Virus record (IMG/VR): IMGVR_UViG_3300033153_013547
Coordinates: 186,001-250,000 of that record
Reading direction: 5' to 3' (one strand)
Length of the DNA: 64,000 bases
Shown here: piece by piece, positions 29,358-57,142 of the stretch
How positions within the stretch are numbered: the first letter of the stretch is position 1
Layout: every line of letters starts with the position of its first letter
Notes under the pieces: generated by a model
Database searches by the model: none
Told to the model about the DNA's origin: nothing
What the model saw: the letters and a program-made list of their open reading frames with translations, nothing else
Program-made: the position numbers and the translations under genes

Positions 29358-30440
29358 TTACTTCCCAGATTTAGCTCTATTACATGCCTTACATAACATT
29401 TGACAATTTTCAGGAATTGTCTTTCCACCCTTATGCCATGGGGTTATGTGATCTGCTTGCATTTCATCTATCTCAAAATGCTTTTCACATTTTACACAAA
29501 TGCCCTTCTGCCTTTCATATGCTTCCCTCTTCTGTCCTTCTGTAAATGCTCTAATATTTAGGTATTTTTCTTCTCTTGTCAAAACATATGAAAAAATACC
29601 AGACTTCTTGGTCACATCCTCATCTTGCATCAATTCAAATATTTCCTTATCCAACTTAACGGGGTCTATTTGTTTGTCTTTGAATTTATTGTATAAAAGT
29701 CCAAGTGGAACTTTCTTTATTTCCCTACGATAGGTAAGAAAAGTAGTTCTTGTCCAATTTATAACACGTTGGAAATATGTCCATAGATCAAGGGCGTCTG
29801 AATTATGCTGATTACGAGCCATATAATCTTCAATATTTTTATCACTGATCCACTCAATTGCAGTTTCTAAATAATCTTGACGAATTGGAGAACCAGGCAC
29901 ATAATCATGAGCCAAATCATAAGCAGGACAACCAGTCTTACTGAAATATCTTTTTGCATCAGTCAACCAAGGACCAGTGTAAATAGCATTACGAAGTTCT
30001 TGATCTGTCAACTTCTCACCAGCTATATTGATGGTTTTAAACCAGTCTAACTTTTCCTTGTCATTTCCTTCACAAAAATAAATCATCAACTTATAGTCAA
30101 GAATCTGCTCTTTCTCTGTGTCCTCAAGATTGTGAAAATACTGATAATCCAGTGAGAAATTGCCTGCTACATATTCACAAATGCTTATGGTTCTTTGCTG
30201 TCCATCCATAACTTCATAGGAACCATCTGTGTTCTTGACCCAATACATTACATTTAGGGGAAAATCCTTTCTTACTGTTTCAATTACAGCTGCCCTTTGC
30301 TTGTCTTTGTAAATAAATTCTCGTTGATATTTTGGACGAATGTTGAGCTTTCCACCATAACCAATAACACCTTCTTCGTTGTTATTGATGTATTCATTTA
30401 CTACTTCTCTGATAGTAATTTCTTTAAGTTCTATTTTCAT
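29358..30440 (-). CDS. DUF262 (ParB/GmrS-like) plus HNH endonuclease
   Basis: RPKYQREFIY, VMDGQQRT and FKTIN...ELRNA (DUF262); CVKC...ADHITPWHKGG...CKACN (HNH). Confidence 0.9.
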   Translation of the reverse strand: MKIELKEITIREVVNEYINNNEEGVIGYGGKLNIRPKYQREFIYKDKQRAAVIETVRKDFPLNVMYWVKNTDGSYEVMDGQQRTISICEYVAGNFSLDYQYFHNLEDTEKEQILDYKLMIYFCEGNDKEKLDWFKTINIAGEKLTDQELRNAIYTGPWLTDAKRYFSKTGCPAYDLAHDYVPGSPIRQDYLETAIEWISDKNIEDYMARNQHNSDALDLWTYFQRVINWTRTTFLTYRREIKKVPLGLLYNKFKDKQIDPVKLDKEIFELMQDEDVTKKSGIFSYVLTREEKYLNIRAFTEGQKREAYERQKGICVKCEKHFEIDEMQADHITPWHKGGKTIPENCQMLCKACNRAKSGK

Positions 30441-32309: not shown

Positions 32310-32924
32310 TTACTTTCTTAGTACGAATTTGTCGATACTTCGCTGATACACTTTCCATCGATCAAATATTTTATCTTGATCTGATATCTCGAAGCGAATT
32401 GCGTATTCGTTGTTGGTATTGTTCTTGCCTGATTCCCTTGTGCCATGAGCATAACCAGCCTTAGTTAGATCAAGCTCTTTATGCATTTCATTATTGGTTA
32501 ATAGGAAAGTATAACGAACGAACTCCTCACTTCTTATGTCAAATGCTTCAACAATATAGTCTACTTCCTGCCAAGGTCTGATCTGCACTATGTTTACATT
32601 GGAACCATCGTGCATCAGCAGCGAGCACTTATATTCGAAATGGATACCATTAGCATTTCTACAATCTCCCCTACCATCAGATGCCTTGACTTTCACCAGC
32701 CCGTTTTCTCTTATGAATCTATTTTCTATTCTAGGAGCAAATGCCTGACTACTTAAGAACGACATACCATATATAAAATATTCCCAACTTTCATTGTTTC
32801 CCCAGCTCCTATCTTTGCCAATAGTTGTCTTGATATAGTTCGGTATTTTACTAGCCTCTTTTAATTGTTGCAAAGTTAGCTTGATTTTCTGCAATTCTTT
32901 TGACCGCCTTGTCGTAAAACTCAT
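32310..32924 (-). CDS. putative type II restriction endonuclease
   Basis: PD-(D/E)XK-like GDC...FEYKCS and VQIRPW; overlaps the adjacent MTase gene. Confidence 0.6.
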   Translation of the reverse strand: MSFTTRRSKELQKIKLTLQQLKEASKIPNYIKTTIGKDRSWGNNESWEYFIYGMSFLSSQAFAPRIENRFIRENGLVKVKASDGRGDCRNANGIHFEYKCSLLMHDGSNVNIVQIRPWQEVDYIVEAFDIRSEEFVRYTFLLTNNEMHKELDLTKAGYAHGTRESGKNNTNNEYAIRFEISDQDKIFDRWKVYQRSIDKFVLRK

Positions 32925-33603
32925 TATTAGATTCTATACCAACGAATTGCCTATTCAAATTAGTAGCGGCTACAGCCGTAGTCCCACTACCAATACAATT
33001 ATCTAAAACTAAATCATTTTCATTGGTATATACTTTGATTAAATACTCAAATAACTCAAGTGGTTTTTGGGTAGGATGCCCTCCCTTGATCCTCGGATTA
33101 CTTATTTTGATCACGGACCTGGCATGTCTGAAGCCTTCGTTATTTTTATAGCTTGATTTTTGCTGATTATACATATCACTTTTGTAACCAGCCTTTCGGC
33201 TTATGGAATATGGTGTTCCAATCGTTTTCTGCTCATTATATACTGGTATTTTCGTGTAAAATACCAGTATATTCTCATGCACTCTTAGGGGCTGGTGTTT
33301 TATGTTGAGCTGTCCTGATCCTATAGTCTTTTCCCATATCAACTCATATTTAAATAACTCAATATTACTTGCTATCAATAATGAAGTAAATGGTTGTGAA
33401 GCCGTCAAGACGATGGCCCCGTTGTTCTTGATAATCCTTTTATATTCTTTCCACAATGGCTCAAAAGGTATGATCACATCCCATTTACAGTTGGTCGTTC
33501 CATATGGCAAATCACACAGGATCATATCAATAGATCCGTCTTCAATATGTGGCATTATATCCAAACAATCTCCAAGGTAGATATTATTAGGCTCTATTTT
33601 CAT
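32851..33603 (-). CDS. N4/N6 DNA methyltransferase (beta class)
   Basis: GDCL...DLPYG...HPTQKP...VLDNCIGSGTT. Confidence 0.92.
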   Translation of the reverse strand: MKIEPNNIYLGDCLDIMPHIEDGSIDMILCDLPYGTTNCKWDVIIPFEPLWKEYKRIIKNNGAIVLTASQPFTSLLIASNIELFKYELIWEKTIGSGQLNIKHQPLRVHENILVFYTKIPVYNEQKTIGTPYSISRKAGYKSDMYNQQKSSYKNNEGFRHARSVIKISNPRIKGGHPTQKPLELFEYLIKVYTNENDLVLDNCIGSGTTAVAATNLNRQFVGIESNNEFYDKAVKRIAENQANFATIKRG

Positions 33604-33604
33604 T

Positions 33605-34378
33605 TTACATCAACCCTTCTTCCTTCTCCTTCACATCATCCATTTCTGCATGCCTTCTTACATCTTTCAATCTTTCTACTGCCTTATCATAATATTGTTT
33701 GTCTAATTCACAACCCATAGCATTTCTACCTTGCTGTATTGCAGCTACAAGCATAGTGGCAGATCCACAAAAAGGATCCAAAACAACATCTCCAGCATTA
33801 GAATGTATATCTATAAGCTCATGCATCAATTTCAATGGTTTTTGGGTAGGATGTAATCTCTTGCCCCCATCTCTATGTATTGGCTGACTAAAAACACCAT
33901 TATGATATTTTGCATGAAATGTAGGTTTTGATCCCTTTGTGGCTACAATAGCAACTTCACGAGCATTTGTCAAATAAGATACCTTAGAATTTATAGGCAC
34001 AGGAATTGTCTTGATCCATTCAATGAAACGAAGCATTTTGAACTTTTTGCTCTTCAGCAGACAAGCCAGGGATTCTAATTTCCATAGATCATAGAACACA
34101 ATGATAGTGCCCCCTTTTCTTAGCACACGATAACATTCTCCAAAAACATTGTCAAATAAACTAGCATGATCTTCTGCAGCAATCTTGTCCCACTTACCAA
34201 AATCCATAGATATTCTTAGACGCTCAACTCCCTTGTCACCCATAGCCTGAAACCCTGTTTTCTTTGATATTTGATAAGGTGGATCAGTAAGCACAAGATC
34301 AATAGAATTATCATCTATTTCCTTGAGAAAGTCCTGGGCATCTCTATTTTCAAAAACAAGATTAGGCTTTATCTCCAT
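33605..34378 (-). CDS. N4/N6 DNA methyltransferase (beta class)
   Basis: DPPY, HPTQKP, VLDPFCGSAT. Confidence 0.92.
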   Translation of the reverse strand: MEIKPNLVFENRDAQDFLKEIDDNSIDLVLTDPPYQISKKTGFQAMGDKGVERLRISMDFGKWDKIAAEDHASLFDNVFGECYRVLRKGGTIIVFYDLWKLESLACLLKSKKFKMLRFIEWIKTIPVPINSKVSYLTNAREVAIVATKGSKPTFHAKYHNGVFSQPIHRDGGKRLHPTQKPLKLMHELIDIHSNAGDVVLDPFCGSATMLVAAIQQGRNAMGCELDKQYYDKAVERLKDVRRHAEMDDVKEKEEGLM

Positions 34379-35026
34379 CTACACCAGTTCCTCTTTCACA
34401 ACATCTAAAAGATTGTTGTATATTATGCCCAATCCATTATGGAATTCTTTATCTAATTTGTTGCCTATATCCAGATAGTTTTTATTACTAACAGAATGTA
34501 ATCCACTGAAATAATTATAGCCATCATTGGGTATTGATGTGGTTATTTGATCGCCACTACTACGAAGGTTGGGTATATCCTCCCTCGATATCACGGCAAA
34601 CCCTATATCCATTGTTCCCTTGCGATTGTTGCCTCTTTGTATAGTCATTAGATAGTCAAACTCTAAATCATGTACATCTGGATCTTGACTATTATTACCC
34701 AATTTATTCTTGATCACTATTGACTTTGCAGTTGTGAGTCGATTGGGAGATTTTTTGAGCGGTTGTTGAAACATATATGTCTGGATTTTGACAGAGATTC
34801 TATCTTTATTATTGTACATTAAATCATATCCAACATTGTACGATGATTCCAAAACATTCTTACCAACATAAGGCTTAACAATAGTATAACACAACAAATG
34901 ACTAATATGAAATCTATAATCGGGCTTATTCATTTCTGGCGGTATTCCTCTAGACGCCATCTCAATAGATTTTAATATATTGTTATGTTCCAATCGACAA
35001 AATCGTATAAAACTGCATCCAAACAC
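34379..35026 (-). CDS. putative restriction endonuclease (divergent PD-(D/E)XK)
   Basis: GYDLMY...ISVK motif; lies between two MTase genes. Confidence 0.45.
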   Translation of the reverse strand: MFGCSFIRFCRLEHNNILKSIEMASRGIPPEMNKPDYRFHISHLLCYTIVKPYVGKNVLESSYNVGYDLMYNNKDRISVKIQTYMFQQPLKKSPNRLTTAKSIVIKNKLGNNSQDPDVHDLEFDYLMTIQRGNNRKGTMDIGFAVISREDIPNLRSSGDQITTSIPNDGYNYFSGLHSVSNKNYLDIGNKLDKEFHNGLGIIYNNLLDVVKEELV

Positions 35027-36009
35027 TACTTACTTCCTTTACAATACTTGTCTATAATATTTTTGATTGAGAATTTTCCTCTTCCGTATTTCTGTTGCAA
35101 GAATAAATTCACTTCGCCCTGTCCTAAACCTTTGTCTAACAACGATTTATAATCATTACGGATCGAGGCAATTTCTCCTTCTTCTATCTTTTTGCCCTGA
35201 TTTTTGGGCACAACATTTACCACTTTTTTCATGTTATCAAGATCACAACCAAATTTTATCTCTCCCAATTTACTAATATGATGATCAAAAATACTCTTAT
35301 TAATCTCATATCCCACTATCTTTCTGCCCAATTTGATAGCATTATATGCTGTAGTAAAATTACCCATAAAAAAATCACACACCATATCCCCAGCATTGGA
35401 TGAATATAAAATCATTTTTCTAACCAATTCATTTGGTAGTTTGTTTTGGTTTTTTGGTATTTTGGGATCATATTCTTTATTAATAATAAAGACATCTTCT
35501 AGATCCTGATATAACAATGACTTACCTGTGGAGGTCTTTTCTTGTGATCCAAATCTACAATAGGTATTGAAAATATTTTTGCTTTTTATGCTTTTGCTAT
35601 AATATAAAATATGATAATGTGAAGTTACATATTTCTTTTTTGTATACACACCAAAATTATATTTCCAGATAATATGATTAATCTCATGTAACTTTAGGGC
35701 ATAAGCTGCATTTAACACATGCCTCAAATTACTATGTCCCATGATAATATACATTGACCCATTTGGTTTCAATATTCTGGATGCTTCTGTCATCCACTCA
35801 TGCGTCCATTTCCCGTAATCTGCAGGGGCTTCGACATAACCATCTATGATATTAGACGAATCTCTTTTATAGTGTTTATCAAATGATATCTCATCAATGC
35901 CAAATGGTGGATCATATATCCCTAAATCAACATGATTATCTGGGATATCTGCTCTGCTGCTCATACAATCAGCATTAAATATCTGAATTTTGGGTTTTCT
36001 TTCTCTCAT
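35026..36009 (-). CDS. N4/N6 DNA methyltransferase (beta class) with C-terminal extension
   Basis: DPPF, NQNKLP, VCDFFMGNFTT. Confidence 0.88.
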   Translation of the reverse strand: MRERKPKIQIFNADCMSSRADIPDNHVDLGIYDPPFGIDEISFDKHYKRDSSNIIDGYVEAPADYGKWTHEWMTEASRILKPNGSMYIIMGHSNLRHVLNAAYALKLHEINHIIWKYNFGVYTKKKYVTSHYHILYYSKSIKSKNIFNTYCRFGSQEKTSTGKSLLYQDLEDVFIINKEYDPKIPKNQNKLPNELVRKMILYSSNAGDMVCDFFMGNFTTAYNAIKLGRKIVGYEINKSIFDHHISKLGEIKFGCDLDNMKKVVNVVPKNQGKKIEEGEIASIRNDYKSLLDKGLGQGEVNLFLQQKYGRGKFSIKNIIDKYCKGSK

Positions 36010-51048: not shown

Positions 51049-51300
51049 TTAATGTTGCAATGTAGCAATAACACTCACTATATGATCGAATTTTACATAA
51101 TAATATCGATCAATAACCGTAGGTTTGGTGACATCAAACATCGATCCACAGATATCTCTTCTGTCTTTCATTTGATGAACCAATTCTTCTACTTCATGAG
51201 AAGATATGTTCTCTAAATCTATTACATGTAACTCCCCATGAATTTCCACTTTTATTTCAACATCATAGAAATCATCATCTCTAAAATTCAGTTCTTTCAT
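51049..51300 (-). CDS. hypothetical protein
   Basis: ATGA coupling to the DnaE-C stop. Confidence 0.6.
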   Translation of the reverse strand: MKELNFRDDDFYDVEIKVEIHGELHVIDLENISSHEVEELVHQMKDRRDICGSMFDVTKPTVIDRYYYVKFDHIVSVIATLQH

Positions 51301-52391
51301 GATGGTTCTTTTACCTCCAACTGTTCCAACTCAAACACTTTCTTAATTACTATTGTGCCTCTATTACTTACCTTTCCCTCAATACACACAGGATTATTAT
51401 TAACCAGTAATCCCAGTGAGGCAATATCTTTCTCATCATCTTCATCATAAAAATATATGCATGGTAGATGAGTTATCCCGTCAGAAATTTCAAACACAAG
51501 GTAAGGGGTTCCTTTTCTGCTAATAAATGATCTTCTTGAAGAAACAAGACCAACATACTGCCCCTGAACCTTGCCTATTTGTCTTGATTCCGTAGGATTA
51601 TGAGCTCCTGCAGGTATATTATAAGCATCTAAAATGCCACCAGAAATATACACTCCCAAGATCTCAAACTCCATGGAACTTAATTCAGCCTTACTAAACT
51701 CCCCTATGATTACAAGTTCATCTATATCTAGATCAAGAGGTAATGGCTCACGTGATTCTGCCTTTTTATTCTTTAGCCTTGCTTTATTCTTAGCATTCCA
51801 TTCATGTATTTTTCTATAAGCATATAAGAGAGCTTTACGTGTCAGCACAACATCACTATTATCTAACAGAGGTATACCATCAAACGCACCTATTTTGATT
51901 AGATTAATCATTCCATCTTTACGTGCTGTGCCCCTAACTACAATATCCTGCACAGATTTATATGGTCCATTGTCTTCTCTGTTTTTTACAATGACACTGG
52001 CTGAATTTAGCCCCACCTTCCTTACAGAAGTCAGCCCAAACATAATATGTCTAACTTTGTCATCGTCTTCATATGGTGTAAACATAGTACCAGAAATGTT
52101 GATCCTTGGTGGTGAGAGCTTTATTTTCAATTGTTTACACTCCTTCATGAAATCCCTAAGAGTATTCTCAAGATCATCTCCACTTTTAGACTCAATAGCA
52201 TCAATCATAGATGCAGCAATAAAAATATGTGGCCAGTATGTTTTTACATAGGCAGTATGATAGGTCAAGATAGCATAAGATACTGAATGACTGTTCTGAC
52301 TAACCAAAAATTGTTTAGCCCTTTCATCTGTTACTAGATAATTGTGAGGAGGACCATCAAGTGAAAGACTTATAAAGGCTTTTTTATTCAT
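51297..52391 (-). CDS. dnaE: DNA polymerase III alpha, C-terminal piece with N-terminal split intein half (IntC)
   Basis: IntC ...PHNYLV...FLVSQN followed by extein SHSVSYAILTYHTAYVKTYWP; PPRINIS; HhH FGLTSVRKVG; LIKIGAFD; EFEILGVYISG; OB fold. Alternative TTG start at 52418. Confidence 0.92.
   Translation of the reverse strand: MNKKAFISLSLDGPPHNYLVTDERAKQFLVSQNSHSVSYAILTYHTAYVKTYWPHIFIAASMIDAIESKSGDDLENTLRDFMKECKQLKIKLSPPRINISGTMFTPYEDDDKVRHIMFGLTSVRKVGLNSASVIVKNREDNGPYKSVQDIVVRGTARKDGMINLIKIGAFDGIPLLDNSDVVLTRKALLYAYRKIHEWNAKNKARLKNKKAESREPLPLDLDIDELVIIGEFSKAELSSMEFEILGVYISGGILDAYNIPAGAHNPTESRQIGKVQGQYVGLVSSRRSFISRKGTPYLVFEISDGITHLPCIYFYDEDDEKDIASLGLLVNNNPVCIEGKVSNRGTIVIKKVFELEQLEVKEPS
52293..52391 (-). 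mobile_element. split intein C-half (IntC, ~33 aa)
   Basis: Block F-like FISLSLDGPPHNYLV and block G LVSQN/S. Confidence 0.85.
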
Positions 52392-52875
52392 ACCTTGTTC
52401 CCATCCATCTACAGACAATTAATCCAGAATTGATCTTTTCATAATTCACACAAATATCCAAAAACTGATCAACAGTAGCAATAGCACTATCAGTTCCTGC
52501 TGTTTTTAGTGCTCTTGCAAATATTTGCCTATTTTTATCCTGATCTATTACACCACGAATATTCTCCATTACATTCCACTTTTGAGCCATTTGTCTAATA
52601 CAAGTCCAGTGAGTCATCAATATAGGATCCTTGTTGATATTACGTCCATATCCACGAATTGTGGGTAGTTCAGAGGCACCAGCCTGCTTAAATACTTTTG
52701 ACATACTACGTATTATGCTTGATCCCTTACAATAAAAATAATCAGTTCCTGGTAACTCATCACGTTTAACTACAATAGCTGTTGTTGATCTCATCCTTGT
52801 ATCTTTAGGTAATTTGATCAAATAGTAATTATTACCACATATACTAACTTTGCCAATTATATTGTTATCCATCAA
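52384..52875 (-). CDS. hypothetical protein between the two split-intein halves
   Basis: AAAGGA RBS; overlaps the IntN stop and the IntC start; no recognisable endonuclease motif. Confidence 0.7.
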   Translation of the reverse strand: MMDNNIIGKVSICGNNYYLIKLPKDTRMRSTTAIVVKRDELPGTDYFYCKGSSIIRSMSKVFKQAGASELPTIRGYGRNINKDPILMTHWTCIRQMAQKWNVMENIRGVIDQDKNRQIFARALKTAGTDSAIATVDQFLDICVNYEKINSGLIVCRWMGTRYE

Positions 52876-54541
52876 TTAATAGTCCTTTATTATCTATTAC
52901 AACTAGACAATTACACTCATTTGGCATTTTATACCCATCTTCATTGAGGAAGTAATGATCTCTTGTGCATTCTATTTCAACATTTTCATTGCCTACTTTA
53001 ACTATTGGTTCATCAAAAGCAAAAGTTACTGCTCTCACAGTATTAGTTATTATTCCACCATTGCCCACATAAGAATAAATAGTATCTCCAAAGTTCAACT
53101 GATCTATTCTTACAAGACCACTTGGTGTCAAAACCAAAGTATCTTCACTCAGACACTTATTGAAACCATAATTTCCAAAACCTTCTATCTGTTCCCATAG
53201 TTTGGTAGCTTCTTCTAACGTCCAGCCTGAATGACGGACACAACCATCAATAAATTTTGGCTTAGCCTGAGCAAGCTTAGAGGACAACTTTTTACCAACA
53301 ATTCTTCTTAGGTTATCCCCCTCATTAGGACTAAACCCAGCAATTTTCTGAGCTATTTCTATAATACTTTCTTGGTATATGATAAGACTAGAAGTTTTTT
53401 CCAATATAGGTTTCAGATCATCATGCAAATATTCTGGCTTTGTCCTTCCATGCCTAAGAGAAAGGTATTTTTCTTCAAATCCTGCTGACATAGGTCCAGG
53501 TCTGTGTAGAGCTATAACATCTGAAATATCTTCTATGCTAGTAGGCATACATTTCTGCATAGTTTTCCTGATCCCCACAGATTTCATTTGAAATAACCCA
53601 GCATACAAGCCTTTTTGCATAAATTCAAAAACCTTAGGATCATTCATGGGAATATCATCAATAGTCATACTATTTTCAATGTATCCCATGCTATGAGCCA
53701 TATTCAAAGTGTTTTGTATAACTGACAATGTGCCAAGACCTAAAAAATCTATTTTACATAAGCCTGCTAACCCTGCAGACTTCATATCTAGTTGCACAAC
53801 ATTGTTACCACTAGCATCTACATACATAGGCACAATTGACTGCAATGGCTCATTAGATATTATGATCCCAGCAGCATGCAATCCAGTCTGTCTATAATTT
53901 TGCCTGAGGGAATTAAATATAGCAATAAATTCATCTATGTCCTCAAGACAATTTTCACCCAAAGTCTGCTTGCTTACCTCAACAATTTTAGCAACATACT
54001 GCCTTAGTTCTTCATGAATAAATATTTCATCAGTCCCTATCCAGTCTCCAGTGCTCATATCTACATTAGTAGCAGGCAAATACATTTTAGATATCAAGCC
54101 AACAGATGCTTCTTCACTGCTTCCACATATACATCTAACTATGTCTCTAAAAGCAGACTTAGGTTTGTATTCTGCATAAGTGCCTATGCTGGCAAAATAT
54201 TTGTTACCATATTTACTTCTGACAGCATCTTTCACTCTGTCTCTACCATACTTGTCAAAATCTATGTCAAAATCTGGTTGCTCTCTTTTGACAACAAGAC
54301 CAAACTCTCCATCAGGTTTTTTGCTTGTGATCCCAAGAGCATATGCTAACAATGAATTAGTCTTGTTCTTGTTGCCTGCTCCACAATCACAAGCCTTATT
54401 GATCATATAAATCATATGATCATCAACATGATAGAATTCATATAAATCAAGTTCGTTAGAGATCCTGTCCATCTCTTCTTTACTAAACTTTTTCTCCCAT
54501 CGTTCAGTCTGCTGGTGACAAAAATCCCTTAGTTGGCTCAT
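52865..54541 (-). CDS. dnaE: DNA polymerase III alpha, catalytic middle piece with C-terminal split intein half (IntN)
   Basis: PDFDIDF, GLHAAGIII, KIDFLGL, GLFQM, LHRPGPM, IYQE, LRRIVGKK, YGFNK then CLSEDT intein. Confidence 0.93.
   Translation of the reverse strand: MSQLRDFCHQQTERWEKKFSKEEMDRISNELDLYEFYHVDDHMIYMINKACDCGAGNKNKTNSLLAYALGITSKKPDGEFGLVVKREQPDFDIDFDKYGRDRVKDAVRSKYGNKYFASIGTYAEYKPKSAFRDIVRCICGSSEEASVGLISKMYLPATNVDMSTGDWIGTDEIFIHEELRQYVAKIVEVSKQTLGENCLEDIDEFIAIFNSLRQNYRQTGLHAAGIIISNEPLQSIVPMYVDASGNNVVQLDMKSAGLAGLCKIDFLGLGTLSVIQNTLNMAHSMGYIENSMTIDDIPMNDPKVFEFMQKGLYAGLFQMKSVGIRKTMQKCMPTSIEDISDVIALHRPGPMSAGFEEKYLSLRHGRTKPEYLHDDLKPILEKTSSLIIYQESIIEIAQKIAGFSPNEGDNLRRIVGKKLSSKLAQAKPKFIDGCVRHSGWTLEEATKLWEQIEGFGNYGFNKCLSEDTLVLTPSGLVRIDQLNFGDTIYSYVGNGGIITNTVRAVTFAFDEPIVKVGNENVEIECTRDHYFLNEDGYKMPNECNCLVVIDNKGLLIDG
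52868..53155 (-). mobile_element. split intein N-half (IntN, 96 aa)
   Basis: Block A CLSEDTLVLTPSG and block B IECTRDHYF; the ORF stops with no C-terminal blocks. Confidence 0.9.
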
Positions 54542-54599
54542 ATCCTCTCCACTATATTTCTTTTGTCTCAGTAGCTTCTTTGTCTAATGGTTCTCTCAT

Positions 54600-54917
54600 T
54601 CAGTCTGCTTCTTTGTCAAACAACTGGGGCATCATGGATTCTAACATATCTGTTACATCATCTAACCTTTCCTTTAGTATATCAATCTTTTCTTCCAGTG
54701 CTTCAAGCTTCTGACTCATGTCTTCTGTATAGATCACATGGGTTGGAGCAGGAGGATAACCACCATCAGGATAAGGTAAGGGAGTACCAATAAATGAGTC
54801 AGGAATTAGTGGATCCTGCTTCCATGTATAATCAGTTGTTCCACTATCTGTGATTTCTATCCAATTGTGATCATTGGTGCGGTAAATTCCATGCATACTA
54901 TTATCATCACTAAACAT
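54600..54917 (-). CDS. hypothetical protein with coiled-coil C-terminus (paralogue of 55539-55910)
   Basis: KLEALEEKIDILKERLDDVTDMLESMMPQLFDKEAD. Confidence 0.65.
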   Translation of the reverse strand: MFSDDNSMHGIYRTNDHNWIEITDSGTTDYTWKQDPLIPDSFIGTPLPYPDGGYPPAPTHVIYTEDMSQKLEALEEKIDILKERLDDVTDMLESMMPQLFDKEAD

Positions 54918-54925
54918 TTACACTC

Positions 54926-55564
54926 TCACTTCCTTTGGTAATTGTGCGCCAATAATTGTATATCATCACTATGACGCAAACCTACTTTCTCTAACCTCTC
55001 TGCCTCGCGTTTTATTACATACAAACACAATGACGGCTTAGCAAGTAACATTCGCTTTGTTGCAGTAAAGGCATAATCATTACAATAACCATAATAACCA
55101 CCCTTACACAAATTATCTAATTTGTGGGCATAACGTTTGCCTGCAGAGGTAAGATCTAGTCTATAGGTGAATTTTTCATTCCACTCTAACATTTGAAAGG
55201 GAAATTCTGCCACATAATGACTTTCTATGTATGCCCTATATGGATCAAGTAAATAAGCATGTCGACCTGCATTTATTCTGGTAGTCTTGATCATCCCAAA
55301 TGCCACTAAATAATTTATTGCTTCAAATAGTTGCTTACTACATGCACCATACTTTGTCATAATAAAATCATTTTTCAGATTTATTTTATTATGCCTATGT
55401 CCTAGTATACCTATACCAGGATGCATGTAAAGACACAGATAAGTCATGTCATCAAGACCCAGCACAGGTTTACTATTGTTATAAAACAGTATTCTAACAA
55501 CATAATCACGTATACCAAGGTCTAGAGGTTGCCATGTATTACCATTCATGAGCACTATCCTCAT
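54926..55564 (-). CDS. winged-helix protein, YwgA/Panacea(SocA)-like
   Basis: YGACSKQLFEAINYLVAFGMI...LDLTSAGK pattern. Confidence 0.4.
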   Translation of the reverse strand: MRIVLMNGNTWQPLDLGIRDYVVRILFYNNSKPVLGLDDMTYLCLYMHPGIGILGHRHNKINLKNDFIMTKYGACSKQLFEAINYLVAFGMIKTTRINAGRHAYLLDPYRAYIESHYVAEFPFQMLEWNEKFTYRLDLTSAGKRYAHKLDNLCKGGYYGYCNDYAFTATKRMLLAKPSLCLYVIKREAERLEKVGLRHSDDIQLLAHNYQRK

Positions 55565-55910
55565 CTAACGATTTTCTCATCCAATCTGCTTCCTTATCAG
55601 ACAATTTTGGCATCGCAGATTCTAGCATATCTATTATGTCTTCTAACTTATCTTTTAGTATGCCAATATCTTCTTGCAATTTATCAATCTTTTCTGCCAT
55701 GGATAGAGGCATAGCATATGATAACATGTTGGACATCATTGCCTGTGTATCTATTGCAACATCATTGTTGGGATCATTAAGAACACGTAAATCATCAATA
55801 TGATAATCACCCTGCACTCTATTTACGTCTGCTACCAATCTTGCTCTTGCTGGCTCTGACAACGATGACCAATCAAAAGATTGCAGAATTTCACCATCGT
55901 AATATACCAC
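55539..55910 (-). CDS. hypothetical protein with coiled-coil C-terminus (paralogue of 54600-54917)
   Basis: KIDKLQEDIGILKDKLEDIIDMLESAMPKLSDKEADW. Confidence 0.65.
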   Translation of the reverse strand: MVYYDGEILQSFDWSSLSEPARARLVADVNRVQGDYHIDDLRVLNDPNNDVAIDTQAMMSNMLSYAMPLSMAEKIDKLQEDIGILKDKLEDIIDMLESAMPKLSDKEADWMRKSLDEDSAHEW

Positions 55911-57142
55911 TATTCTTCACCTATTCCAAAATCATCATAGCACACAGTAGATCTACCATAATTCAAAAACCTGCTAAACATCAGCCCATACTTTATTGGA
56001 TCAACACTAGTTATACCAAGTGAGTATGCTGCAATTGATCCTGCTCCAGAACCTCTGCCTGCACCCACACCAACATTCAGCGTCCTTGCAGTATCTACTA
56101 TATCAGACACTAAAAGAAAATAATCTACATAGCCCATCTTGTCAATAATGAACAATTCATGATCTAATCTATCAGTAATTTCTTTAGACAAATTCTGGCT
56201 ATAGAGTTGTCTGGCTCCATCATAGCATTTGTCTCTAAGAATTTTTGTCTTATATGCATATGAAAGTGTCTTGTCTCTGATCCTAAATTCAGGCATATAT
56301 GATTTGCCAAGAGCAAGTTTAAACTCTACCTTATCTACTATTTCCATTGTATTCTGACAAAGAGGGATTGCATCTATGCCCACACTATTATATCTTTCTA
56401 TAATTTCATCATATGAATGAAGATAATAAGAATGAGTGCCTGAGAATGGTTTAATACCTATTTTGTTAGATGAAGAAAACCTTACTGCCTGCAAGAAGCC
56501 ATGAGCCTTCCAGTCAGAAGCATTTAGATAATGGGCATCTGTGGCACAAATAGTTTTGATGCCCATCTCATTCAGAAATACTTCTGCCACAACCTTTTCT
56601 TCTGGAATATCATGTGCATGAACTTCAAGATAAAAATCTTCCTTGAAGGCTTCTACAAACCTATCAAGCAGGGTTTTATACACATCCATATGTCCTGATG
56701 TAATAAGCCTTTGCAGACTTCCAGATATACAACTTGCTGTTGCTATGAGACCTTCAGAATTCTGCAAAACGCTGTCCATGGGAAAAATCGTTCGGCTGAT
56801 ATTGTCTCTACCCACTCTCGTTTTAGAAGCACCCAAAAGCTTGAGAAGATTATGCCAGCCTGCTTCGGTCTTTGCTATCAGAACCAGATGTGACTTAGGA
56901 TATTCTATGCCAAAATCAGAGTTGATATACTTTACATAAGCTTCTATTGCTATAATAGGTTTAATACCATAATTCTCACATTCAATAGTTTGCTCAACAC
57001 AAGCACCCAATGAGCCATGATCACTTATGGAGACTGCTTTTTGTCCTAGTTCTATAGATCTTTTAATAATATCTTTGGGTCTTCCAAGGGCATCAAGAAC
57101 AGAATAAGAACTATGAATATGAAGATCACAGAATTCACTCAC
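55910..57142 (-). CDS. dnaE: DNA polymerase III alpha, N-terminal piece (PHP domain plus GS-motif segment)
   Basis: LHIHSSYSVLD, SDHG, HLVLIAK, SCISG, TDAHY, GRGSGAGS, DPIKYGLMFSRFLN; ends before the PDxDxDF motif. Confidence 0.93.
   Translation of the reverse strand: MSEFCDLHIHSSYSVLDALGRPKDIIKRSIELGQKAVSISDHGSLGACVEQTIECENYGIKPIIAIEAYVKYINSDFGIEYPKSHLVLIAKTEAGWHNLLKLLGASKTRVGRDNISRTIFPMDSVLQNSEGLIATASCISGSLQRLITSGHMDVYKTLLDRFVEAFKEDFYLEVHAHDIPEEKVVAEVFLNEMGIKTICATDAHYLNASDWKAHGFLQAVRFSSSNKIGIKPFSGTHSYYLHSYDEIIERYNSVGIDAIPLCQNTMEIVDKVEFKLALGKSYMPEFRIRDKTLSYAYKTKILRDKCYDGARQLYSQNLSKEITDRLDHELFIIDKMGYVDYFLLVSDIVDTARTLNVGVGAGRGSGAGSIAAYSLGITSVDPIKYGLMFSRFLNYGRSTVCYDDFGIGEE

Follow-up and report, generated by a model that had tools for sequence, protein, structure and literature searches.

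How does a phage obtain one replicative polymerase from a gene that lies in three pieces, and does a split intein rejoin two of them? The question is raised by a dnaE locus in IMGVR_UViG_3300033153_013547, a phage-like IMG/VR record of 261,124 bp of which positions 186,001 to 250,000 were analyzed (64,000 nucleotides, nt; hereafter, the window). DnaE, the alpha subunit of DNA polymerase III (Pol III), is spread here over three co-oriented open reading frames (ORFs) on the minus strand, and a first-pass annotation of this DNA had claimed that the second and third carry the halves of a naturally split intein (IntN and IntC) whose excision would restore the conserved motif FNKSH. Our analysis upheld this claim, and the locus, as judged from its sequence, is probably a functional trans-splicing intein of the fractured-gene type. 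Its features, in window coordinates and amino acids (aa), are as follows.

55913..57142, minus strand: DnaE piece 1, 410 aa; PHP domain and start of the palm; intein-free; Pfam PHP at E = 5e-37, DNA_pol3_alpha profile positions 2-101, PHROG 405 positions 42-440.
54603..55910, minus strand: three unannotated ORFs of 123, 212, and 105 aa that occupy the space between pieces 1 and 2, where no intein lies.
53156..54541, minus strand: DnaE piece 2, N-extein, 462 aa; palm and fingers, ending ...NYGFNK; Pfam DNA_pol3_alpha 3-260, DNA_pol3_finger at E = 5e-45.
52868..53155, minus strand: IntN, 96 aa; Cys1, block A CLSEDT, block B T64-R-D-H67; stop at 52865-52867.
52387..52872, minus strand: ORF163, 162 aa from ATG or 163 aa from a TTG at 52875; orphan ORF between the intein halves.
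52293..52418, minus strand: IntC, 42 aa from a TTG at 52418 or 33 aa from an ATG at 52391; FISLSL, HNY, terminal VSQN.
51300..52292, minus strand: DnaE piece 3, C-extein, 331 aa from Ser+1 (SHSVSY...); HhH and OB region; Pfam HHH_6 at E = 1.5e-16.

The junctions of the intein were established to the residue. The piece 2 ORF (52868-54541, 558 aa) closes its polymerase part with ...EQIEGFGNYGFNK and then runs CLSEDT...CTRDH...LLIDG to its stop, and the ORF at 51300-52418 opens from TTG with MSVDGWEQG, continues from the ATG at 52391 with MNKKAFISLSLDGPPHNYLVTDERAKQFLVSQN, and then reads SHSVSYAILTYHTAY. At the DNA level, the junction of an intein-less dnaE would read ...GGNTTYAAYAAR/TCNCAY... 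(a slash marks an insertion point here and below). The DNA polymerase family PHROG 405 matched residues 86-462 of piece 2 at profile positions 433-793, ending at the Lys of YGFNK, and residues 43-326 of piece 3 at profile positions 794-1042, restarting at the Ser of SHSVSY; Thermus Pol III alpha (816-836) likewise aligned with piece 3 from S43 onward. Because the profile stops and restarts exactly there, the 96 residues that end piece 2 and the 42 or 33 that begin piece 3 are not polymerase sequence, and this continuity across positions 793/794, with the Thermus alignment, supports the predicted restoration of FNKSH. The final codon of IntC occupies 52295-52293, and the interval 52293-53155 named by the annotation proved to be the exact outer edges of the two halves.

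Could dnaE nevertheless be a decaying pseudogene, fallen out of use, with the intein halves as relics? This scenario would fit a polymerase that is divided into three pieces and has, at its first break, a segment that is duplicated and degenerate, and the window covers 64 kb of a 261-kb genome whose remainder may hold another polymerase. Such decay is very improbable, however, given uninterrupted pieces of 410, 558, and 364 aa, strong PHP, palm, finger, and HhH scores across all three of these long ORFs, and the presence of the catalytic motif PDFDIDF. In addition, the in-frame codon usage is host-like, and the split intein is surrounded by a minus-strand replication module comprising a DnaG-like primase, a RecA homologue, and an AAA ATPase. 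The G+C content at third codon positions was 0.18-0.24 in the intein halves and ORF163 versus 0.27-0.30 in the exteins, which is weakly compatible with a foreign origin of the former.

The evidence for IntN is direct. Its first residue, Cys463 (Cys1 of the intein), stands directly after K462, where the polymerase profile match ends, and its residues run CLSEDTLVLTPSG...IECTRDHYFL...LLIDG to the stop. Cys1 and H67 were invariant in a 72-sequence alignment, and T64-R-D-H67 lines up with TKDH of the Npu intein. The first-pass annotation had named comparison with intein hidden Markov models (HMMs) and databases as a check on its reading; this gave support for the N-half, whereas IntC found no significant match. 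The NCBIfam model TIGR01445 (intein_Nterm) scored IntN at 24.4 bits (cutoff, 24.5; E = 4.4e-5), and phmmer against PDB sequences retrieved Npu DnaE IntN (E = 0.01-0.02; identity, ~29%) over an alignment that spans Cys1 to block B. When 1.84 billion representative proteins were searched exhaustively with IntN (HMMER), 76 Hint or intein matches at E<=1e-3 were returned; in nearly all of them, the aligned part starts at a Cys with an extein or a ...HN before it, and these are thus intein or Hint starts. An HMM of 19 distinct contiguous mini-inteins from the same site matched IntN at E = 7e-10 among 938 window ORFs.

Structure prediction agreed. The AlphaFold2 model of IntN, built on the 72-sequence alignment and covering the Hint fold of the N-lobe alone, reached a mean predicted local distance difference test score (pLDDT) of 82.3, with residues 1-86 confident and the last ten not. 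The best 50 matches of this model in a Foldseek search of the PDB were all inteins or HINT domains; gp41-1 (6riz) matched at E = 6.8e-4 with a TM-score of 0.67, and the Npu DnaE N-fragment chain 4lx3_A gave TM-scores of 0.72/0.68 and a root mean square deviation of 1.9 Å. The N-half is a real Hint domain N-lobe; of the Hint fold whose absence from structure prediction would have counted against the original reading, the N-lobe is present.

How unusual is an intein at this position? IMG/VR DNA was scanned for encoded Y-x-F-N-K-C-x-x-x-[D/N]-T, yielding 95 stretches, 75 of them in DnaE context. About 65 viral contigs carry an intein at FNK/S, 38 of them contiguous (126-396 aa) and 27 split. The stop of the split N-half ORFs lies 87-114 aa after the Lys in 24 cases and 274-341 aa after it in three (L033, L074, and L086), and an ORF of the form IntC-SH[SA] lies 0.1-1.8 kb downstream at 17 of the 27 split loci. 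The same pattern applied to bacteria, with one genome per species, identified at least about 95 DnaE genes with an intein at the FNK/S junction; among the matches listed, the carriers include Deinococcus, Anaerolineae, Rokubacteria, Patescibacteria, Gemmatimonadota, Gammaproteobacteria, and others, and nearly every allele is contiguous. Endonuclease domains are present in some of the contiguous inteins at this site. Two DnaE proteins from the exhaustive search illustrate the range: P0030 holds a contiguous 140-aa mini-intein ending ...VSSN/SHSMSY, and P0028 (L002/L003) ends in a 91-aa N-half at FNK and is therefore split. The DnaE FNK/S site is an intein hot spot in phages and bacteria, not a novelty. 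Accordingly, the proposal that the present intein was independently derived stands in one respect only: it is not a copy of the cyanobacterial DnaE intein, given its site, its Ser+1, and its ~29% identity to Npu, but its site is neither special nor newly derived.

Two further observations were made on these loci. The DnaE middle fragment P0028 begins, as piece 2 does, at the palm, and a large LAGLIDADG intein occupies a second site in it; no C-terminal DnaE piece was found in the next 4.8 kb of the 18-kb contig, and the intein halves appear dispersed. L054 (IMGVR_UViG_3300013122_000379) encodes DnaE as one ORF of 2809 aa with at least five inteins, and only six extein residues separate two of its HNH-type inteins (…VSHN/SYGFNK/CLTGDT…).

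The same population allowed the residues of the C-half to be judged. The C-halves compared, all distinct, were 52 viral and 86 bacterial ones, the latter here and below being those among the matches listed. Ser+1 was present in 138 of 138. The penultimate residue of the viral set was S in 18, H in 16, C in 8, A in 4, K in 3, and R, Q, and Y in 1 each, the single Q being that of the present intein, and 83 of the 86 bacterial C-halves had a penultimate His (VHN end). The block-F Asp was found in 125 of the 138. At least ten alleles lack it while retaining an otherwise readable block F, eight of them viral (the present one included) and two bacterial (L019, L021, L035, L040, L042/L071, L081, L085, L112, L128, and window 52293-52391). 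All ten have HNY, not HNF, a penultimate A, K, R, or Q, and Ser or Asn in place of the Asp; most of the alleles with this trio are split, and one (L019) is contiguous. The penultimate Gln and the block-F Ser of IntC, which the annotation had read correctly along with the 96-aa length of IntN, are by sequence comparison part of a recurring three-residue signature. The label "atypical" that it gave to the C-half holds in that IntC is too divergent for any profile, but not for these residues, since a non-His penultimate residue is the rule in viral alleles and loss of the Asp recurs in ten alleles.

The N-lobe tree was poorly resolved and placed the present IntN on a long branch; its N-lobe identity to any same-site allele is at most 34%. 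Joining it to the well-supported clade that includes the other non-Asp alleles gave a topology that was not rejected and scored better (approximately unbiased test, p-AU 0.58). Changes between split and contiguous states on this tree numbered seven by parsimony, at least two of which were forced by well-supported branches.

What, then, identifies IntC as the partner of IntN? The segment ends ...VSQN/SHS, with its terminal Asn directly before Ser+1 and DnaE homology resuming at S43. In an alignment with 14 split and 19 mini-intein alleles, the spacing from the block-F Ser to the His of HN[FY] equals that of the alleles, and the loop from HNY to the terminal Asn is the longest in the set. A rough, post hoc estimate puts the chance occurrence of a terminal Asn and an HN[F/Y] at the right distance at ~5e-5. 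The identity of the C-half is thus suggested by its position, its terminal Asn and the Ser+1, the spacing of HNY, and the presence of a matching N-half. Its start, on which the annotation had been silent, is ambiguous (33 or 42 aa). The ATG is favored by the gene caller, whose products at the locus are 558, 162, and 364 aa, and by an upstream Shine-Dalgarno (SD)-like GGATGGGA. The TTG has no good SD-like sequence upstream; it provides 16 residues before the block-F Ser, as is typical of the family, but SVDGWEQGMNKKAF misfits the strand pattern.

Several findings weigh against a working intein. IntC lacks the Asp at block-F position 4 (usually Asp, here Ser) and the penultimate His (here Gln), although the F:13 His, that of HNY, is kept. 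It was unmatched by Pfam, NCBIfam (TIGR01443 included), and PDB sequences, and HMMs of 51 same-site C-halves or of the seven most similar ones gave E values of only 0.4-0.6 among the 938 ORFs. From the ATG, seven residues precede the block-F Ser, compared with 15-18 in every other split allele, and the amphipathic "KIKSIxxxG" strand that every other split allele keeps is missing. The databases searched contained no close relative of this allele, which leaves the conservation of its odd residues uncheckable; ORF163 has no nuclease signature and no Pfam, PHROG, or NCBIfam match; and the single public run that shares words with the window, from a hydrothermal-vent metagenome, yields two short contigs (53222-53742) that cover neither of the intein/ORF163 junctions. 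The real oddity of the C-half is its divergence beyond every intein profile, including the profiles of its own alleles.

On these grounds the halves might be splicing-dead, serving as a non-covalent docking module or not interacting at all, with the polymerase made of separate subunits. The unrecognizable C-half, its missing Asp and penultimate His, and its possibly missing first strand would all fit, and dnaE already works across the intein-less break between pieces 1 and 2, so that non-covalent assembly is tolerated. We regard this outcome, the main alternative, as plausible but unlikely. The primary nucleophiles and the block-B Thr and His are all kept, the terminal Asn lies exactly before Ser+1, and ten alleles in all are without both the Asp and the penultimate His, among which the contiguous L019 must splice for its host protein to be in one piece. 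Moreover, splicing without a penultimate His is documented: cyanobacterial DnaE and other inteins dispense with it (PMC4031507, its references 74 and 87), and the block-F Asp and penultimate His are described as assisting, less conserved residues (PMC4031507). A class 3 intein, which needs no N-terminal nucleophile and has a Cys at block-F position 4 (WCT triplet), was ruled out by the presence of Cys1 and by the Ser at position 4.

A further possibility, which we hold to be quite doubtful, is that the C-half embodies a distinct catalytic solution of a small DnaE-site lineage (no block-F Asp, HNY, and a non-His penultimate residue). The present allele would be its extreme, with a C-half of 33 aa, the first strand lost, and the break point one strand off that of all other split alleles, and ORF163 could encode either a helper of assembly or a homing nuclease of a new type. 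An active intein of this form would combine a compact Ser+1 split architecture with unusual chemistry at the active site and would probably be orthogonal to inteins in use. Speculatively, the IntN tail NKGLLIDG may stand in for the first strand that IntC is missing. The joined halves can be aligned (local MAFFT) in a way that fits the tail as a replacement strand, but AlphaFold2 leaves residues 87-96 unstructured, and tails of up to 19 aa are found in other alleles too. Charge complementarity between the halves was considered as another oddity and rejected: the net charge of IntN (-9) and that of IntC (+1 or -1) both lie within the range of the other alleles.

ORF163, likewise beyond the scope of the first-pass annotation, fills the space between the halves. 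An 8-nt overlap joins it to the IntN stop at one end and to the IntC ATG at the other, both overlaps being of the type ATGRATAA (ATGGATAA and ATGAATAA; 52865-52875 and 52384-52391) and shifting the frame by an equal amount, and each junction has an in-frame start with an SD-like purine run upstream. Its net charge is +9, and only in its own frame does it show host-like codon usage; the two intein halves are likewise host-like in frame. A search of 5.8 billion clusters for relatives of ORF163 returned only itself, and its AlphaFold2 model was unreliable (pLDDT 49.6). The candidate role of homing endonuclease found no support in Pfam, PHROGs, or NCBIfam, in the ESM Atlas (all leads below 0.9), or in comparison with the intervening ORFs of 13 other split loci, to which ORF163 showed no similarity. 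The idea that its C-terminus LDICVNYEKINSGLIV is a decayed block F/G was rejected as a chance resemblance (allele HMM, E = 57). Gap genes at other split loci encode LAGLIDADG proteins (L027, L040, L044, and L085), a NUMOD3-bearing protein (L007), Vsr-like and Mom proteins (L081), and a methyltransferase (L098), and four other split loci have no intervening gene. A LAGLIDADG, NUMOD3, or Vsr-like gene in the gap is the layout of the fractured genes of Dassa et al. 2009 (PMC2677866). By analogy with these loci, we infer that a mobility gene may have fractured the intein and that ORF163 would be either this gene or what remains of it.

Three ORFs in three frames, abutting or overlapping, might also be an artefact of assembly or sequencing, in which two indel errors broke a contiguous intein with an internal domain; the public reads miss both junctions, and contiguous endonuclease-bearing inteins do exist at FNK/S. 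This is most improbable: both junctions are of the same 8-nt type, each with its own in-frame start and SD-like purine run, ORF163 is unlike any intein endonuclease domain, the gene caller recorded products of 558, 162, and 364 aa, and the same split layout occurs at 26 or more other viral loci.

We therefore return to the trans-splicing intein as the favored reading, in which a class-1-type intein at the finger motif FNK/SH would have been broken into a 96-aa N-half and a 33-42-aa C-half, the former fused to the palm-fingers fragment and the latter to the HhH/OB fragment, with an unrelated 162-aa gene between them. The co-orientation of the three ORFs, their 8-nt overlaps, and the lack of a terminator-like site suggest that they are probably translated from one messenger RNA. 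After translation, the halves would associate and rebuild the Hint fold, Cys1 would form a thioester, Ser+1 would attack it, and cyclization of the terminal Asn would follow, leaving the polymerase religated to ...GFNK-SHS.... The primary catalytic set is kept (Cys1, Thr64/His67, the His of HNY, the terminal Asn, and Ser+1), and this, together with an otherwise intact host gene in a replication module and a contiguous relative that must splice, makes a functional intein the most likely interpretation.

Where does such an intein stand among known systems? One of the closest parallels in layout is offered by the "fractured genes" of environmental phages described by Dassa et al. 2009, among them gp41-1, NrdJ-1, IMPDH-1, and three DnaE loci, with N-halves of 88-105 aa and DnaE sites other than the cyanobacterial one (PMC2677866). 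As in the cases treated there, a split intein interrupts a phage replication gene, its halves adjoining on one strand with a free-standing gene between them (PMC2677866), and gp41-1 was the best structural match of our IntN model. In contrast to those cases, the present middle ORF has no GIY-YIG, Vsr-like, LAGLIDADG, or HNH similarity, and the present C-half is far more divergent. Novikova et al. 2016 placed the PolIII-alpha insertion points a-d and g within 75 residues of the finger domain, the cyanobacterial split intein being at point a (PMC4760082); FNK/S is probably one of points b-d or g. Other DnaE inteins at the same site share the identical insertion point, Cys1, and Ser+1 with the present one, and 27 viral ones are also split, whereas the present IntC is unrecognized by the allele HMM and the N-lobe identity does not exceed 34%.

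The cyanobacterial Ssp and Npu DnaE inteins share with the present intein the host protein, the finger motif, a natural split into ~100-aa and ~36-aa halves, and the absence of a penultimate His, and they show weak but detectable sequence and fold similarity to its IntN. Unlike it, they have the block-F Asp and Cys+1 and are inserted at Y/CFNK, four residues upstream; the cyanobacterial split site is AEY/CFN (PMC8484483), so that the annotation had correctly placed the present site four residues downstream, with Ser+1 in place of Cys+1. The cyanobacterial halves are encoded at distant loci and the present ones 0.5 kb apart, and the identity is ~29%. Given its site, its +1 residue, and its genomic layout, the present intein does not belong to the cyanobacterial DnaE split-intein family. 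Its category, its host gene, its site, and the fact that it is split are all already known or abundant in public data; its specific sequence, its C-half, and its middle ORF are new.

For intein biology, the population at this site is more useful than the single locus. At the FNK/S junction, contiguous mini-inteins and inteins with endonuclease domains occur side by side with many forms that were split independently, which makes this junction a natural series for how inteins become split, and the covariation of a missing block-F Asp with HNY and a non-His penultimate residue is a mechanistic lead. For protein engineering, the locus contributes a further Ser+1 split intein candidate whose C-half is short. 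Because dozens of better-behaved same-site alleles with canonical C-halves are equally available, a demonstration of activity would be needed to give it more than modest practical value.

The surroundings of the locus were also surveyed. The window has 36% G+C, and no transfer RNA genes were found in its 64,000 nt. Near-identical DNA gave 0 matches among 50,697 phage records, a search of IMG/VR proteins for close relatives returned the source contig only, and the window's own proteins were all that ORF163, the IntN region, and the region of IntC and its extein retrieved in word-indexed protein searches. Between 51000 and 57600, no terminator-like site was found and promoter-like sites were not in excess. 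The dnaE breaks contained no meaningful repeats, and an Rfam search of them gave no match at E<=0.1 to a group I intron or other RNA.

The first, intein-less dnaE break (54541-57142) has features of its own. About 100 aa of the palm start are present in both piece 1 and piece 2 (31% identity), the copy in piece 1 being well conserved and that in piece 2 degenerate; piece 1 ends in a degenerate YDDFGIG, and the true catalytic PDFDIDF sits in piece 2. The existence of PHROG families of ~460 aa and ~780-820 aa suggests that a two-gene layout of DnaE may be common in phages. None of the three small ORFs in this break matched Pfam or PHROG. Two of them, at 54603-54917 (105 aa) and 55542-55910 (123 aa), flank the 212-aa ORF and share a 39-aa C-terminal segment with 59% identity (LE.L.E.I.ILK..L.D..DMLES.MP.L.DKEAD).

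Elsewhere in the window, a 360-aa ORF at 29358-30440 (minus strand) joins a GmrSD N-terminal domain to an HNH nuclease domain. Very large ORFs (1835, 1564, 1047, and 904 aa) without a Pfam match at E<=1e-3 lie at 4292-24705, and three adjoining ORFs of ~250-330 aa at 32854-36009 (minus strand) are distant paralogues of one another (24% identity; E down to 5e-20).

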